The notes: generated by a model from the sequence alone, not told the origin. Shown: positions 32,802 through 46,810, numbered from the stretch's first letter. The stretch: 64,000 nucleotides of DNA from Trichosphaerium sp. ATCC 40318 (GCA_038496445.1 JALMLS010000491.1:1-64000), one strand, 5' to 3'. A program made the numbers and translations.

Positions 32802-35153
32802 TCACTCATCAAATTCATGGCTTTTTCCAGGTAGAGATTGTGTTACTGAAGCAAGGTAACATCCGGAAGATGCTGATCTTATAAGTTGTCGTCTTCTTGC
32901 ACGATTACGCCTCTCAGTCTGTTTCAAAATATCTGAAAGTGCAACATAGATAAAGTTATACTGATCTTTGTTTTGCACCATACCTGTTTTGAAAAAAACA
33001 CAATCAATATCAAACACATAAAAAACAACCAAGCACATAATGTAAAAAAACACAAAAGAGAAAAAAAGACAACCACCCACAGTAACAAAGAATAAAAGAA
33101 AAAAAAAACATTTTGTATTTTTTTTTCAATGTGATAAAAACAAAGCAGGTGTAAAGGACTAAGTTAAACGTACCAACACGTTGACTTCGTAGATGTAGCA
33201 CAGTATCTTTAACATCTATTTTGGCACCTCTTTGGGCTTCATGTACAAGCATGTGTATAGCTACAAATGTACCAGTACGTCCAATCCCAGCGCTGCAATG
33301 ACAAACAACAGGTCTCTTTTGTTCACGTCGGATATCCAACTCACGTATTAGACTATAAATAACATTTGTATCAGTAGGTACGCCAAAATCTACATAACAC
33401 AGTTAAACAAAGAGTAACAGTTTAAAACAACAAGACACCCAACACGTGCATGCAGATAGTTCACTGAAAAGTGACTTTCAAAAAGCCATTTTTAGTAATT
33501 TTTTTTGTTACTCGGATTGAATACTGCACGTGTTTTTTTCAAGTAGTTGGATAATAGAAAAAAAAAATGAGATTTCGGGTTTATGTACCTGGCCACCCTA
33601 CAAATTGAATTTGTGTAGCTTCATGTGCGGTAATAGGGACGGTTTCAGTCAGTTTAAACTAAGAAAAAAAAAGATTTAGATTCATGAACCGTTAATAAAA
33701 TACCCACTACTCAAACATAGTTACGCGCTAAAAAATATAAAATTGCACTACGCGAGTACATGGCTAGAATTCCACAACCTCCCAGAAAGCCGTTTCATTG
33801 AATGTTTAAAAAATTAACTAGCGTGATCAAAAACAAATATAATCGTGTACCTCTTCGTCTTCAGATTCGCTACTAGAAAGTGCGTCTTCTGAAAACGCAC
33901 TAAGATCCTCTTGATAATAAATGAGGAATTTCCTTACAATGATCAAATCACCACGCTTCTTTACGCTTGTACATTGAACTCTCATTTTACCGTAGGTTTG
34001 TGTTTTACCTTCTTCAGGCCAATAAACATGTGCCTAAAAAAACAAGTAAATTACATCATACTACGCGAGCAAGTAGCCAAAAGGATTAGAAAAAATCTAT
34101 TTGTTATATACCTTTACGCGGTTACCACGCTCAACTGTTTTAGTTAACATAAGAATCACCGAAGCATTTTGTTCCCATACCTATTCAACTACTCAGAAAA
34201 ATCACTACGCGCTTTACACGCTCCAAAAGAAACAAAAAACGCGCCACAACCTATGGTGGTAGCCACACATTGGTCTGTTTATCAGTGTTGCAATTTAAAA
34301 TAAAATACGAACTCACCATGCGCCAGAAATCACCAAATGTCTTAGGCAATGGAGCTTGACAGCATATGTAGCATTGATCTTCGACACCAAGTTTACTTGC
34401 TTTACCCTTTACGTGACTTGCATTTATGTACTCGGAGCCTTTATGCCCATCATTCTTTAGTTTAACCTACGAAATAGAACTGTCAGACGAAGAAAAACAG
34501 TATGACGACACTGCAACCCGATAAGTTCAAAAAAAAAAAAAGAATTGTAGAATAGGGTTTTATCGATAAAAACGTAAAATACTATTGCGTCAATGCAGTG
34601 GTAAGTATCAAAACTGTAAAAACTATCTTTGAGTATTCAGCAAAAAAGTGGGTTCTGCTGATTGTCTTGTGGATGGAATCAAGGCGTTTAAAAGGGTCGT
34701 ACAGCTGTTTTTTCAAAGGGGATAACGTTGCCGTATCTATTTGTTCGTTAATACGGCCAATCAAGTAAGTCTTGAATGCAATGAAAATGGAGGTGTATAT
34801 TACCTGTTTTTACTCTTATTAGGGGATTTCAAAGCGTCTTCAGCGAAATCCTTCCTTTCGCAATATTATAAGCTGTATACGTATAGAAATGATTGTTTGG
34901 GGTGTTGACAATACTTTTTGATCATTTTCAAAGGCAGACGTATTGGTACGAAGAGGAAACGGACAATTGCCAAAAATGAAGCTAAATAATACTCTATCGT
35001 ACTCGATGTGTCGCTTGCGAACTTCTCTAAACTCTGAATAGATCTTTTTCATGTCTTGCTCGCTCAAAGTAACCATATTTTCGTCCTTTCTCATCTTCTT
35101 GGCGTGTTGCTTCGCCACGGTAATACCACCGCATGATTGAGCGAGTTCTCCAT
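32802..35153 (-). CDS. Classical protein tyrosine phosphatase
   Basis: KNR, YINASHV, YICCQAPL, WPDFGVP, HCSAGIGRTG and MVQNKDQY. Confidence 0.95.
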
Positions 35154-40060: not shown

Positions 40061-40507
40061 TATAATACCCAAACTATAAAGTATCATGGTAACCAGTATT
40101 ATGACTCATTCACCAATTATCACCAACGTGATGTAGCGTACAGCTTGCTACATGCTTTAATTGCAGCTCCAACATCAGTGAATTCGTGAGCAGAAAAGCC
40201 TGTGCTTCTCGTTAAGGAAGAATCCATGATTTTTATCAAATCCAATGAGTTGCCAGCAGTGTCCATTACAGTTACTGTAAATGATAGGGCCTACTTACGT
40301 CAAGCAAGACTTAAGTAGCGAACTTAACTAGCACACAAAAAAACGTTTAGAGACGCCAGGCGTCAAATCATTAATTTGTTTTATTATACTTCAAATACGT
40401 AAGAACTACGCAGTACCAATACATTCAAAGGCAAAACCCCTGACACAGACTTTAATTAGGCTTTTACATTTTGATTCTCGCTGGAACGTTATCTGTTGCT
40501 TTGTACA

Positions 40508-42247
40508 ATGGCTAAAACGGTCAAGAAACAGACTATTAATGTTTTTATTCATGGTCACGTTGATAACGGAACATCAACCCTCCTGGGCCACTTGTTGTAT
40601 AAATGTGGTATAATAAGGGAACAAACAATACAAAGGATGAGAAAGAGATCAACCAGACCAAGCCAGGAGTATGCTTCCGCATTGCTTTGTTTCAGAACAT
40701 TCGCGAGTCCATTGCGAAACTGTTATTCACTTGCCACCAATAACTGCAACGTACGTCATTACAAAGCCCAATGTTTTGTTCAAAAAATGTGAACCAAGAC
40801 AGAATCGACATTGTGTTTTTTGATTCTATAGAAAGACCCGCCACGTACAAGAGTTGGGTGACGAGACAACATTTTAGTTGCCATATAACTAAGTTTATTT
40901 TTTGTCAAGGTGTCTATTACTGCAGCAGATACATACACCGAACCATTGATTACAACATTGGCTAAATCATGTGATTGCATTTTATTGGTTGTTTCTGCAG
41001 CTCAAGGAATGTTTGAATCATCAATAGCTCGTCATGGTACAATAATACATTTGTTATCATCTGCCAAGATACTCAGTATTCCAAAAATAATTGTTGCTGT
41101 TACGTATATGGATAGTATTAGTACTGGTGTTAAATATGATAAAGGAAGGTACATTGAAGTGGTGTCAGGAATCCAAAAGATAATGAGAAAGTACGTCAAT
41201 AACCCCTTTTTGTTTATCAACTCGCAAGTCAACCTCTCTTGTTTTTAGCATGAACTACAACATTGAAGATGTTTTGTTTATTCCAGTTTCTGGAGCCCTT
41301 GGAGATAATTTGGTGGATATATCAAGTAACATGCCATGGTGGAAGGGATACACATTACTTGAAGCATTTGATACTATTGGCGAGAATCGTGAAGTAACAA
41401 CATCATTAAAAATGCCCATCACTTTCACCTTGACAGTTAAAGATGTAGGATTTGTTGTAGCAGGAACCGTTATGTCAGGGTGCTTGCGAGTAGGAGACAA
41501 CGTTATCATCGCTCCTACTGGATTAAAAACGAAGGTTATGGACATGGAATATGAACATACCAAGCATAAAGAAGCGCATAAAGGTACTCATGTTGCATGT
41601 TTGTTAGAAGGTATATCAAGAAAAGATGTCAAACGTGGATATGTCATTCTTGCATTAATCCCAAATAAGAAACAACAGATTTTAGTTTCTGAGTTTACAG
41701 CACATGTTATTAGCGCATCAAATCATATTTATGAGGGCAACATGTTACGCTTCGGTACAAATCCTTCAAAAAAAAAACAAAAAAAAAATCAAAAATTTAA
41801 GTAAACACATGATACTTATCAGCATTCATTACATTACATTTCTTTTGAAAACTGACATCTTCTCGTCGGTGATTTTTCTACCACTCATAAGTTTTGTGTA
41901 CTCTAGTTTAACAAACTTTTGGTAGGGCACACAAAGTCTGCAAAGAAGAAATGTTCGGTAACTAAAGTTATTGGGTGTTTGAAAGTAGAAACACATGAAG
42001 TGGTTGAACCAAAGCAACCAAAAAAACTATCAAATGATGAAATTGGCATCATACGGATACAGCCATCTTCTCCTATGTACTGTTGTACAAAAAAGGAGTC
42101 AAATTACTTTGGAAGTCTGTTTCTCAGAGTAGAAGGACAGCATCAGGTAATCCACAGTATTTCCTCCGTTTTTTTTAGGCCAATCCTCATAAACTATAAT
42201 AGATTATTGCAGTTGGTTCTATCGTATCTGTTACATATGTTGAATAA
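40508..42247 (+). CDS. Highly divergent eEF1A/eRF3/Hbs1-like protein with degenerate GTP-binding motifs (splicing near 40750-40800 unresolved)
   Basis: GHVDNGTSTLLGHLLYKCG, ILLVVSAAQGMFE, IIVAVTYMDS, FIPVSGALGDNL and domain II/III barrels. Confidence 0.8.
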
Positions 42248-42358
42248 CATCATCTTCATCTGAGCTGACTTTTGAGCTGTATTGCCTTGGCAGCATGACA
42301 CAGGGCTTGAAATCAATTTTATCTTTGTTTTTTGTACCGTCCATAAATAAAGTTAGTT

Positions 42359-42929
42359 CTAGAAAGTAAAGTAGGAAGTACCATTTGTTGAGCCTTGTAG
42401 TTGGAGATTTAGTAGTAGCCTCAGTGGTTGGAGCATCTGTAGTTGAGCTTCAGTGGTTGGAGCGTCTGTAGTTGGTGCCTCTGTCGTTGGTGCCTGTGGT
42501 TGGTGAAGCTGTTGTTGGCGCATCCGTAGTTGGTGCTGCTGTAGTCGGTGCTTCAGTGGTTGGAGCACTTGTAGTAGGCGCATCGGTTGGTGGAGCGCCT
42601 GTGGTAGGGGCTGCAGTTGTAGGTGCATCTGTAGTTGACACATCTACTGTAGTTAGGTGGAGATAGGTAAAAATAATATCGATCAAGTAGGTGCATCTGT
42701 GGTTGAAGCTTCAGTGGTTGGAGCGTTTGTTGTTGGAGCAGCCGTTGTAGGAGCCTCTGTTGTTGGTGCACCTGTTGTAGGAGCAACAGTTGTTTGTGTA
42801 GCAGTAGTTAGAGCCTCTGTAGTCGGCGCTAAAGTTTACAACGAAAAATAGCTCGTATATTGACAATGCGTTGAGTACAGCGATAAATATGAATGAAATA
42901 AAGAATCTATTAACAGCTGTTAGTAACAT
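42359..42929 (-). pseudogene. APTT-repeat mucin-like gene, frameshifted
   Basis: 15-bp (A/E/D/G)APTT repeats that switch frame several times. Confidence 0.65.
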
Positions 42930-43606
42930 CTTTGATATCACGTCACTTACCCGCCAAGGCTCTCGACCATAAGTTCTTGTAGCAAAAGGTGCCAGACAAG
43001 GAAACACAAAAAATGAAGAATAGTATAAAAGACTCCGCAACCACAACTGTTTTCCTTGTGCAAAACAGTCAACTTAAAAAGCACATAAATTTTTTGACAT
43101 GTGCGAGCACGTGATTTTACATGTAAAGGTAAAAAATTCAAAAAAAAACGATTTATGTACACCGATATAGCGTACTTATAAACAGCTAATAAGCTGCCAA
43201 GGAGCAAAACGGTTCTAAAGTGTCTTTAGCAAAACTTTCAGGCTTTCAAATAAGTATTGGTTTATAAGGTTGCTTTGTGCGTACTAATAGTTTTTAGGGA
43301 GGATAGAGCGAATATTATTTCGCTAAGGCATAATACCCAATCTATAATTGATAAATACAATAGTAGACGTGGAAAAGTCTGTCATGTCTCTGTAGAAGAA
43401 TAGAATCAAGAACATCCATGTTGCCAGTATTAAGGCTATAAGACCAACTACCACCGTAGAAAATAGGAAAAACTCGCTGATAGCTACTAAGACTAACACC
43501 ATATATTGATGGGGCAACCTGCAGCTGCAGAAATTTATTTCATAAATTTTTTACGGTGGTCAAACTTAGGTTCACAACTTTTTTGCGGATAGCCCGTGAG
43601 CACAGT

Positions 43607-45902
43607 ATGGGCAACTTCAAATCTAAAAAAAAGCCTTTAAATCAAATACATCGTAAAGAGAAGCAGAAACATGTACTAGTCGTAGGTATGACAGTGGTAA
43701 CTATTTATAGATAGCTACACAATTTTTGTTGACATTCGAAATAACATCAAAACTTAGGACCAAGCATGAGTGGTACTGTTCAGAATCGGAGTTAATGCGA
43801 TTTACTGAAAAAGTGTTTAGGGAAATCCAAGCTTCTGTTGCAGTTTAGACTCTTAAAAGAGGAAAAATTAACTCCTTGGTACCATCGGTATTACAGTAGC
43901 AAGGGTATATATTTTGTACAATGGTTCTTACGAGTTTTATCTGCACAACCTGAATTTTCAACTCTGGACAGCGTAAGATACATCTAAAGCACTAATTAGT
44001 AATATATGACATAAAATAGACGACACAAGATATGGTGAAGTCGTTTGTAGATATGACTGATGACACATGGACACAACAACACATCGACACTTTAAAACAG
44101 TATTCATATTTTTATTTTGTAAGTCAATCTCTTTGTGAACTAACCCTTGGGCTAGGTTGAAAGACAACAAAGAATTCATGAACATGATTTTGTATACTGA
44201 CTTTAAAAGTATTGTTTTATCCTGTAAGAAAAACATGAAAGCGTGAGTGGATTGTTAACCTTATGATACCTTTGTTTTAACTTTTTTTTTTTCTAAGTTT
44301 CATTGATTCAATTTGCTCTCAAACTGCAGATTCTTTCGTTGTGACTTATGAACAAAGGCTTAACTACTATTCACGTTCTTTCAACATTTTTGACTTAGAA
44401 GGTGAAGTTGATGGTACTGAATATAGATTGGGGGATGTTGGAGGTTTGTTTTTGCAAGTCTTTGTGTTTTCGACTTTTTTCTTTTCTGTATGTCAAATCC
44501 TTCTAGGAAGTCGTAGTGAGAGAAGACGGTGGGTACATGTTTTAGGTGGCATAGATTATTTAATCTATTGTATGTCTCTTGATAGGTGAGTGTCATATTG
44601 TGTTTATGTAATTAACCCTTCTCTCAAAAAAGTTACTTGTACGTTTGTGAAGATGATACAAGTAATGCGTTTGAAGAGTCATTGGAATTACTTCAAGATA
44701 TAATACAACGTTCTCATGTCAATGCTCCTATTGTCCTTGTATTGACAAAACTTGACTTGTTTGAGGAAGAGTTACAAAACCATCCGGAAAAGTTTAGAGA
44801 GTTCTTCCCTGATTACAAAGGTACCAACCTGTTTACCCATGTAGCTTATACATATACGATAGGAACAACAATGAATGCATACGATTGCGCTATGCACGTG
44901 TTCAATGTCATTTGTTCAAGACTAGATAACTCAGCATGTTTTCTTGGTGCTACTTTTACATCCTTGATAGAAAATCCTAATGTGATATCATATGTTTTAA
45001 GACAAACCTCAGGGAAAGGAGACGTCAGTAGTGACAGAGAAAAAGAATTTTCGTCATGTATGTATAATACTAAACCTTACATAAACACACTAATCATGCC
45101 ATAGTATCATCCATCCAACCTTTCATGTTTCCAAGAAAAACATCAACACTGTTACTTGATGTTGCAAAATTAAGCCAAGAAATATATGCCAACATGAACG
45201 AAGATAATGCCTTTATTTGTTCCTTACGCAAATACGGATCTTGCAAACATAAAAGCAAACTTCTAAAATCCCTCAAAAAGCTGTACAAATCAAACACTCA
45301 AGACTTTGATATTAATACTGGAACAGATTGTATTAAATGTCACAAGGTTAGTCCCTCATTTTTTTATGCTTCTACTTATGTAATTCAACTAGGCGATATT
45401 GATGTGCCGAGCTACATTCTTTGAAGGAGCTATTCTTTCTAACAATCTTGGGACAAATGGTGACGACAATACAAGCATTAGCTTAGAAGAAGATGTGTTC
45501 ATTATCAAAACTTTTATTCACTTTGCATACTTTGATGACATACCTCCTAATCTTGATTTGGATACTCTATTGAAGCTCTTAAAATTCTCAGATAAGTATT
45601 GTATAGATTCTCTACAATCTGTTGTGATATTCTATGTATTTAATCATAGTACACGTGATAAGATTACTGACAGTGACAAAGATTATTATTACCTTTCAAA
45701 AATGAGCGAATTTCTTGATTATGGATTATTGGGATGCAACTCGTTCATCATAAACAATATAACTTCCTGGTTTCTCTGTCAGAAATCTAAAAAGCTAAAT
45801 ATGTTTCTTGGCAAACACAAGGATACTGTTGCAGTAAAACATCTCTTAGATCACACTGTTCTGGTGCCAGATGATCCTTCAACAAAGAAAATATCCAAAT
45901 AG
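43607..45902 (+). CDS. G-alpha-like domain fused to a C-terminal BTB/POZ domain
   Basis: MGNFKS, VVGPSMSGKS, DVGGSRSERRRW and LVLTKLDLF. An in-frame intron ending at 45104 joins this to BTB motifs IKCHKAILMCRATFF...FIHFAY...LLKFSDKY. Confidence 0.85.
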
Positions 45903-46810
45903 GCACAGACAATAACACCTCCCACAGTAATTAAAATATTCGCAATCCAGTAGTACACCAAAAGCTACGGTGTCTGTACTAAATGTTGTTTTTTTGGAAA
46001 TTTTAGTTATACTGTTGTTCCTAAATACACTTGAGAGGCTGAAAGGGTGCTCTGCTTGGCTCAAGGAGTCGTTGTTTTGTGCTGTAAGCTTCTAACAATC
46101 AAATCCTGTAGCTCAAGTGGCACTATAGTTGTAGGTGCTTTTGTAGTTGGAGCCTCAGTGGGTGCATCTGTATGCTGTAGTTGTCAGTGCTTCAGTGGTA
46201 GGAGCCTCTGTAGGTGCTTAAGTAGTTGGTACTTCAGTTGCAGGTGCCTCGGTTGTTGGAGCCTCAGTTGTTGGCACTACAGTTGGTGCTTCTGTTGTTT
46301 GTGCAGCAGTTGTTGGGATTCTGTTGTCGGAGCTACTGTAGTAGGTACATCGGTTGTTCATGTGCTGCGGTATAGGCAACAGTTGTAGGTGCATCTGTTG
46401 TCGGTGCAGCAATAGTTGGAACCTCTGTAGTTGGTGCTTCAGTGATTGGAGCATCCGTTGTTGGAGCAACAGCTGGCTGAACCCACGGTTGATGAGCTTG
46501 TAGAAGGTGTTTCTGTACCTTCACATTTGCAACCGCTGTTATAGTTAGCATGGGTTTCTTCAAACAGAAAATCACGTGATTGAAATGTAAAGTTGAAGAA
46601 AAAAACTCTAGCCATTACAAGAGCTCGTCTTGCTGCGCACAGATATCAAATCGACTACACCATTTGCTCATACTTCTTCCATTTAACCTGTGTTGGGTGA
46701 AAAAACTATCACAAATACATACAACAGCGCTATTAACACCTGACAGGTACTTTTAAAGCAGGTTGATGCTGTAATTATTGCTGTAAGTATTGTAGCGTGC
46801 ACTCATTGCC
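45879..46810 (-). pseudogene. Second APTT-repeat mucin-like gene, disrupted
   Basis: EAPTT repeats in shifting frames; stops in the upstream exons. Confidence 0.6.

Follow-up and report, generated by a model that had tools for sequence, protein, structure and literature searches.

Gene model of the locus

The analysed window, 64,000 nt in length, is low-GC eukaryotic DNA (36–37% GC) that is rich in short introns. An exon-by-exon rebuild from the sequence gives a 10-exon model on its plus strand at 43607–45902, with nine GT..AG introns, in which a G-alpha half is followed by a BTB-like half. The model is 1815 nt long (604 codons plus the stop), is open throughout, and has consistent phases at all splices. 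The introns measure 46–72 nt with a GC content of 23–35%, and the GC content of the exons is 34.7%. The exons, together with intron 8, which falls within the linker between the two halves, are as follows.

43607–43685, plus strand: exon 1, MGNFKSKKKPLNQIHRKEKQKHVLVV and the first base of the P-loop Gly; motif read directly from the sequence
43758–43772, plus strand: exon 2, a 15-nt micro-exon encoding (G)PSMS(G) of the mid P-loop, with GT..AG on both sides
43821–43972, plus strand: exon 3, the last part of the P-loop (GKS) and the beginning of the helical-domain region
44020–44099, plus strand: exon 4, helical-domain region; an RNA contig from a ~92%-identical copy joins 44098 to 44156
44156–44242, plus strand: exon 5, helical-domain region
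44298–44443, plus strand: exon 6, switch I and strands beta-2/beta-3 up to DVGG; Pfam G-alpha match and HMMER alignment to 8vga_A
44507–44585, plus strand: exon 7, switch II, SRSERRRWVHVLGG; Ser 44509–44511 at the catalytic-Gln position
44633–45057, plus strand: exon 8, C-terminal half of the Ras-like domain with TKLD, ICSR and the alpha-5 helix, then the first part of the linker
45058–45104, plus strand: intron 8, 47 nt, GTATGT..ATAG, closed in all three frames; no contig cover
45105–45346, plus strand: exon 9, a ~65-residue linker and then the first BTB strands (DFDINTGTDCIKCHK, from 45302); contains the ATG at 45125
45393–45902, plus strand: exon 10, the remaining BTB-like core (to ~45647), ~84 residues of helices, and the stop at 45900–45902

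The P-loop GPSMSGKS is assembled across exons 1–3, with the 15-nt exon 2 placed between introns of 72 and 48 nt, and the GxxxxGKS pattern is rebuilt by the chosen splicing only. The first-pass annotation had proposed a spliced G-alpha reading, and our rebuild recovers it from MGNFKS at 43607 onward with all G-alpha features in their places, including the claimed MGxxxS start and the intact P-loop lysine.

Intron 6 lies within the switch II motif, between DVGG and the following Ser. Only one donor/acceptor pair keeps the SRSERRRW frame, and therefore the DVGG-S reading is independent of any free choice of splice sites. The intron itself (44444–44506, 63 nt) is stop-free in frame, and its retention would insert 21 mostly hydrophobic residues between DVGG and SRSER, in switch II. 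A 42-nt in-frame GT..AG stretch in exon 8 (44821–44862) was also considered as an intron and was rejected, because the spacing in the HMMER alignment with Gi-alpha-1 fits the unspliced reading.

The G-alpha half

The PROSITE rule for N-myristoylation is a Gly followed by an uncharged residue, two residues of any kind, a Ser, and a residue other than Pro. The N-terminus encoded by exon 1, MGNFKSKKK, fits this rule (G2 and S6) and continues into a polybasic run. The P-loop is preceded by ~26 residues, compared with ~39 in Gi-alpha-1, and the N-terminal helix that contributes to holding G-beta-gamma is therefore short.

The G-alpha profile of Pfam (PF00503) matched the exon 6–7 piece with 29.9 bits (E 4e-7) and the exon 8 piece with 50.2 bits (E 2.7e-13), and the gathering cut-off of 48.8 bits was exceeded by the exon 8 piece alone. 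With E limits of 1e-3 or 1, a sequence search of the PDB returned 122–298 chains of G-alpha proteins, and HMMER aligned the exon 8 piece to residues 233–345 of Gi-alpha-1 (3d7m_A). The language-model features of the same piece pointed exclusively to G-alpha clusters. It had no relatives in a metagenome scan, nor in a word search confined to subjects of 0.55–1.75 times the query length, a range that leaves full-length G-alpha proteins and fusions beyond its scope. The pieces from exons 3–5, which are too short for such a search, gave no profile match in Pfam. In this putative helical-domain region, ~125 residues separate the GKS of the P-loop (residue 34) from switch I, which starts at residue 159; the corresponding distance in Gi-alpha-1 is ~128.

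The G1 (GxxxxGKS), G3 (DxxG) and G4 ([NT]KxD) motifs are all present, as GPSMSGKS, DVGG and TKLD, and align with their counterparts in Gi-alpha-1. In switch I (G2), LNYYSRSFNI at 44359–44388 aligns to LHARVRTTGI of 8vga_A, and the HMMER alignment of the wider segment (RLNYYSRSFNIFD against ILHARVRTTGIAD of 8vga_A) contains no gap. Tyr 44368–44370 occupies the position of the catalytic Arg (Arg178 of Gi-alpha-1), and Ser 44377–44379 that of the Mg-binding Thr. Switch II (G3) is well conserved (GSRSERRRWVHVLGG against GQRSERKKWIHCFEG). In the HMMER alignment, GSRSERRRW corresponds to GQRNERRKW or GQRSERKKW, and Ser 44509–44511 takes the position of the catalytic Gln (Gln204 of Gi-alpha-1). The first-pass annotation had claimed the loss of both catalytic residues, that of the Arg from an alignment by eye. 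The HMMER alignments to PDB chains confirm both substitutions beyond the by-eye comparison.

The G4 motif TKLD (44745–44756) aligns with NKKD of Gi-alpha-1 and keeps the Lys and the Asp. It had been listed earlier as a departure from NKxD. That reading of the residues is correct, but its status as a defect does not hold, because TKLD is the characteristic G4 motif of Rac, including Rac1 (PMC2575402; Table 1 of PMC3946479), and is thus no sign of decay. The G5 motif ICSR (44910–44921) aligns with TCAT of Gi-alpha-1 and keeps the Cys; FTSLIE, which had been matched to TCAT by eye, was dropped in favour of ICSR on the basis of the HMMER alignment. The G5 changes (Ala to Ser and Thr to Arg), together with the Thr to Ser change in switch I, could weaken nucleotide binding. 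The residues that contact nucleotide and Mg2+ are retained, namely GKS in the P-loop, Asp and Gly in DxxG, Lys and Asp in G4, and Cys in G5, whereas both residues required for hydrolysis are lost. The half can be recognised as a G-alpha despite its divergence, its P-loop is intact, and the replacement of the catalytic Arg and Gln by Tyr and Ser makes it an atypical member of the family, though still a member.

The alpha-5 helix is largely kept, with NSACFLGATFTSLIEN aligned by HMMER to NVCFVFDAVTDVIIK of Gi-alpha-1 as far as ..LIEN. Beyond this point the chain runs for at least 40 more residues whether the gene ends after the G-alpha half or continues into the BTB-like half, and a free receptor-docking tail is therefore absent in either gene model. 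The receptor-coupling C-terminus had been described as replaced by a BTB domain. This is too broad as regards alpha-5, and it holds for the last ~8 receptor-contacting residues, which give way to the ~65-residue linker and the BTB-like module.

The BTB-like half

By eye, the segment DFDINTGTDCIKCHK of exon 9, continued in exon 10 by AILMCRATFF..ISLEEDV..FIHFAYF..LLKLLKFSDKYCIDSL, matches the pattern of a BTB domain, which is divided by intron 9. The pieces from exons 9 and 10 were searched separately in Pfam, and neither gave a BTB (PF00651) match at E up to 10. Exon 10 likewise had no match to the PDB by phmmer, none in the word search at E 0.01 or E 10, none among 1.84 billion representative proteins by phmmer at E up to 0.001, and no relatives in the metagenome scan.

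Two other approaches point to a BTB fold. In the language-model comparison, exon 10 scored highest (0.94) against a BTB cluster labelled RhoBTB1-like, with which it has 171 of 256 features in common, and all of the family-bearing entries among those listed were BTB proteins, some of them with a SPOP/BPM-type BACK domain. The AlphaFold single-sequence model of exon 10 was poor (pLDDT 46). When this model was submitted to Foldseek (3Di and amino acids), 38 of the top 50 chains were BTB proteins, none of them with E below 0.38; they come from seven proteins, namely SPOP, KEAP1, gigaxonin, KBTBD4, NPR1, NS1-BP and BACH1. The language-model features and the Foldseek ranking are independent but soft pointers in the same direction. 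A VIA-align structure alignment on the same model found only generic helical bundles and was discarded.

On this evidence, we regard the C-terminal module as probably a BTB domain of the SPOP/RhoBTB-like type. The BTB domain claimed in the first-pass annotation thus has indirect support from the language-model features and the Foldseek ranking, but none from Pfam, which was negative on the exon pieces. The ~84 residues after the BTB-like core are predicted to be helical and could form a BACK or 3-box-like extension.

Such a module might serve a different end. The two halves may be fused, with the G-alpha part acting as a nucleotide-free or nucleotide-indifferent pseudo-GTPase binding surface and the BTB part only oligomerising the protein there, in the manner of KCTD12 or T1 domains, on the membrane and without Cullin-3. 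We consider this alternative unlikely, although several features agree with it: G2 and G5 are altered (Thr to Ser, and TCAT to ICSR), the BTB-like sequence is so divergent that neither Pfam nor the 1.84 billion representatives yield a match, and the Cul3-contact residues could not be mapped. The retention of GKS, of the Asp and Gly of DxxG, and of the Lys and Asp of TKLD would be unexpected in a protein that no longer binds nucleotide, and the closest look-alikes of the BTB module (RhoBTB, SPOP/BPM and KEAP1) are Cul3 adaptors.

One protein or two

Whether the two halves belong to one protein depends on intron 8 (45058–45104). When it is removed, the frame reads ..EFSS-L-SSIQPFMFPRK.. into the BTB part; when it is retained, the G-alpha frame stops at the TAG at 45102–45104. 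The intron has a GTATGT donor and an ACTAAT branch-like motif ~12 nt before its ATAG acceptor, its removal restores the frame exactly, and its length of 47 nt resembles that of introns 3 and 7. In a leave-one-out test with a splice-site matrix trained on the gene's own introns, it scored 6.1 and ranked fifth of nine, between the two introns with RNA support (−0.4 and 7.7), and so scored like the gene's other introns. The matrix has little power, as 11 of the 86 exon-internal GT..AG pairs score at least as high as intron 8.

If intron 8 is not spliced, the locus would consist of two neighbouring genes or products: a 369-residue protein with the G-alpha half alone, ending at the TAG at 45102–45104, and a BTB-only protein of ~243 residues from the ATG at 45125. 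These could arise by separate transcription, from a polycistronic transcript, or as alternative outcomes of intron 8 retention. The stop and the in-frame ATG lie only 20 nt apart, the junction has no RNA cover, and the splice matrix cannot tell intron 8 from chance GT..AG pairs, all of which leave room for this reading. The 47-nt segment, however, has the length, donor, branch-like motif and acceptor of the gene's other introns and restores the frame exactly. The 20-nt spacer is also too small for a 3′ end and a promoter, and the intergenic gaps on either side of the gene in the window span hundreds of bases. We therefore judge two separate products to be improbable, and a fusion of the G-alpha and BTB-like halves in one protein to be highly probable.

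RNA evidence

The RNA support comes from contigs of one run (X1) of one public study, placed on 43000–46500. A 235-nt contig matches the locus with 0 mismatches over 45248–45344 and 45391–45528, and joins 45344/45346 to 45391/45393 with exact removal of the intron at 45347–45392. A second contig, of 172 nt, is ~92% identical to 44023–44242 (exons 4–5); it joins 44098 to 44156 with one changed base, lacks the intron at 44100–44155, and carries a Gln109 to Leu change at the splice codon. The contigs thus support two introns, one at the locus itself and the other only in the ~92%-identical copy. Because these joints are spliced, their source is processed RNA, and the 3′ half of the locus is expressed. 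The depth of the X1 contigs is zero over 44287–45222, which includes intron 8.

The divergent exon 4–5 contig suggests an expressed close paralogue, or else a divergent allele with a fast-changing helical domain. No paralogue of the G-alpha-BTB gene was found within the 64-kb window.

The loss of the catalytic residues and the very thin read support would also be expected of a decaying, functionless paralogue from an expanded gene family. We consider this very unlikely: the 604 codons are open over 10 exons with all splice phases intact, the 0-mismatch spliced contig indicates that the 3′ half is transcribed and processed, and the nucleotide-binding residues have been selectively retained.

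Comparison with known systems

The order of domains in the fused model recalls RhoBTB1/2/3 (DBC2) and Dictyostelium RacA, in which a BTB module comes after an atypical GTPase domain without the catalytic glutamine; RhoBTB2 forms an assembly with Cullin-3 (PMC3946479; PMC10413933). The GTPase of RhoBTB is a Rho domain, whereas here it is a heterotrimeric G-alpha that carries a myristoylation signal and a predicted helical insert, and only one BTB-like core is recognisable here in contrast to the two BTB domains of RhoBTB. In the phmmer search against the 1.84 billion representatives, exon 10 had no detectable sequence relationship to RhoBTB. The suggestion that RhoBTB is the nearest analogy is therefore fair for the succession of a GTPase and a BTB module, but it does not extend to family membership.

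Fusions of ARF- and Rab-family GTPases to BTB or F-box domains have occurred in a lineage-specific fashion, repeatedly in protists (Vargova et al. 2021, PMC8358228), so that Ras-superfamily GTPase domains have entered the architectures of ubiquitin-ligase adaptors several times there, and G-alpha is itself an Arf-derived lineage (PMC8358228). That survey lists ARF and Rab fusions, and we found no G-alpha-BTB example in it. Our literature search, whose coverage is incomplete, found no paper that joins G-alpha and BTB in one protein, in agreement with the earlier remark that the architecture is not known to have been characterised. GTPase-BTB fusions are already known for the Rho, Arf and Rab families; a heterotrimeric G-alpha in that position was not found in the papers covered by the search.

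A link between Cullin-3 and heterotrimeric G proteins has a precedent in KCTD5. The KCTD5/Cul3 ligase acts on G-beta-gamma, and CRL3 ligases thus regulate G-protein subunits (PMC10348674, PMC11047111). As a BTB adaptor, the protein described here would likewise connect Cullin-3 with subunits of heterotrimeric G proteins. KCTD5, which has no G-alpha, uses its own C-terminal domain to recognise G-beta-gamma, whereas the G-alpha module would be the recognition part here.

The closest parallel for the altered switch II is found in Rnd1 and Rnd3, which also have Ser at the position of the catalytic Gln (DTSGS there, DVGGS here). Rnd proteins are GTP-bound, lack GTPase activity, and are controlled by degradation (PMC3946479). 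Rnd1 and Rnd3 differ from the G-alpha-BTB protein in being small Rho-family proteins without a helical domain or a BTB domain.

Proposed mechanism

Our working model, for which we consider the balance to be about even, is a single gene for a protein of ~604 residues in which a lipid-anchored, non-cycling G-alpha is connected by a linker to a BTB domain, captures a G-alpha partner, and recruits Cullin-3. The myristoyl group and the polybasic patch at the N-terminus would anchor the protein to the membrane. The G-alpha module with its predicted helical insert would bind guanine nucleotide without hydrolysing it, and once loaded with GTP it would be unable to switch itself off, as in Rnd proteins. 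By analogy with that precedent, the constitutive GTP-like state predicted in the first-pass annotation is plausible. Because the free receptor-docking tail is gone, a GPCR probably does not drive the module. The conserved face of switch II would capture a G-alpha partner, while the BTB module would dimerise the protein and recruit Cullin-3. The target of ubiquitination might be the captured partner, or the protein itself, as has been proposed for RhoBTB2 (PMC3946479). The gene model, the G-alpha homology, the two substitutions and the lipidation motif are established by the analysis; the splice that joins the halves at this locus, the fold of the BTB module, its binding to Cul3, the loading of GTP and the nature of the partner are inferred, and the Cul3-adaptor role of the G-alpha-BTB protein is put forward solely on that footing.

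A more far-reaching extension, which we hold only tentatively, is that the protein belongs to a family, built up in this amoeba lineage, of membrane-anchored, non-hydrolysing G-alpha modules wired to Cullin-3 via BTB. The locked G-alpha would be the substrate receptor in such a family, and the targets of ubiquitination would be G-protein partners such as G-beta-gamma, RGS proteins, effectors or receptors. G-protein signalling would then be connected to CRL3 ligases in a third and independent way, in addition to RhoBTB and KCTD5. The locus could also toggle between a G-alpha-only product and the fused one through retention of intron 8.

If the working model is correct, an alpha subunit has been put to a new use, as the static recognition part of a ubiquitin ligase and not as a receptor-driven switch. 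The combination of the Arg to Tyr and Gln to Ser substitutions with intact nucleotide-binding residues would also make the protein a natural test of a permanently "on" G-alpha in the cell.

Neighbouring features

Just upstream of the G-alpha start, the minus strand contains a hydrophobic ORF of 64 residues at 43323–43517, and 43373–43519 is covered by an X1 contig that is unspliced and differs by an insertion of 6 nt and a deletion of 2 nt. The ORF may represent exon 1 of the adjacent repeat gene on the minus strand, rather than a 5′ UTR of the G-alpha-BTB gene. The G-alpha-BTB gene is flanked by arrays with a 15-nt period at 42387–42820 and 46234–46472, the consensus units of which are nearly identical. 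Read on the minus strand, they encode Thr/Pro-rich repeats of the TTEAPTT type, and could represent two mucin-like paralogues or a single gene on that strand within which the G-alpha-BTB gene lies.

An eEF1A/HBS1-like translational GTPase gene lies ~1.3 kb upstream on the plus strand (40496–42263), where ORF pieces match the GTP_EFTU, domain 2 and eEF1A C-terminal domain profiles of Pfam. Its P-loop reads GHVDNGTST, with Thr in place of Lys, and it is a second GTPase in the window with a damaged nucleotide site. Farther away, the minus strand at 33010–33339 contains an exon with the active site of a protein-tyrosine phosphatase (HCSAGIGRTG; Pfam Y_phosphatase, E 3.9e-15).
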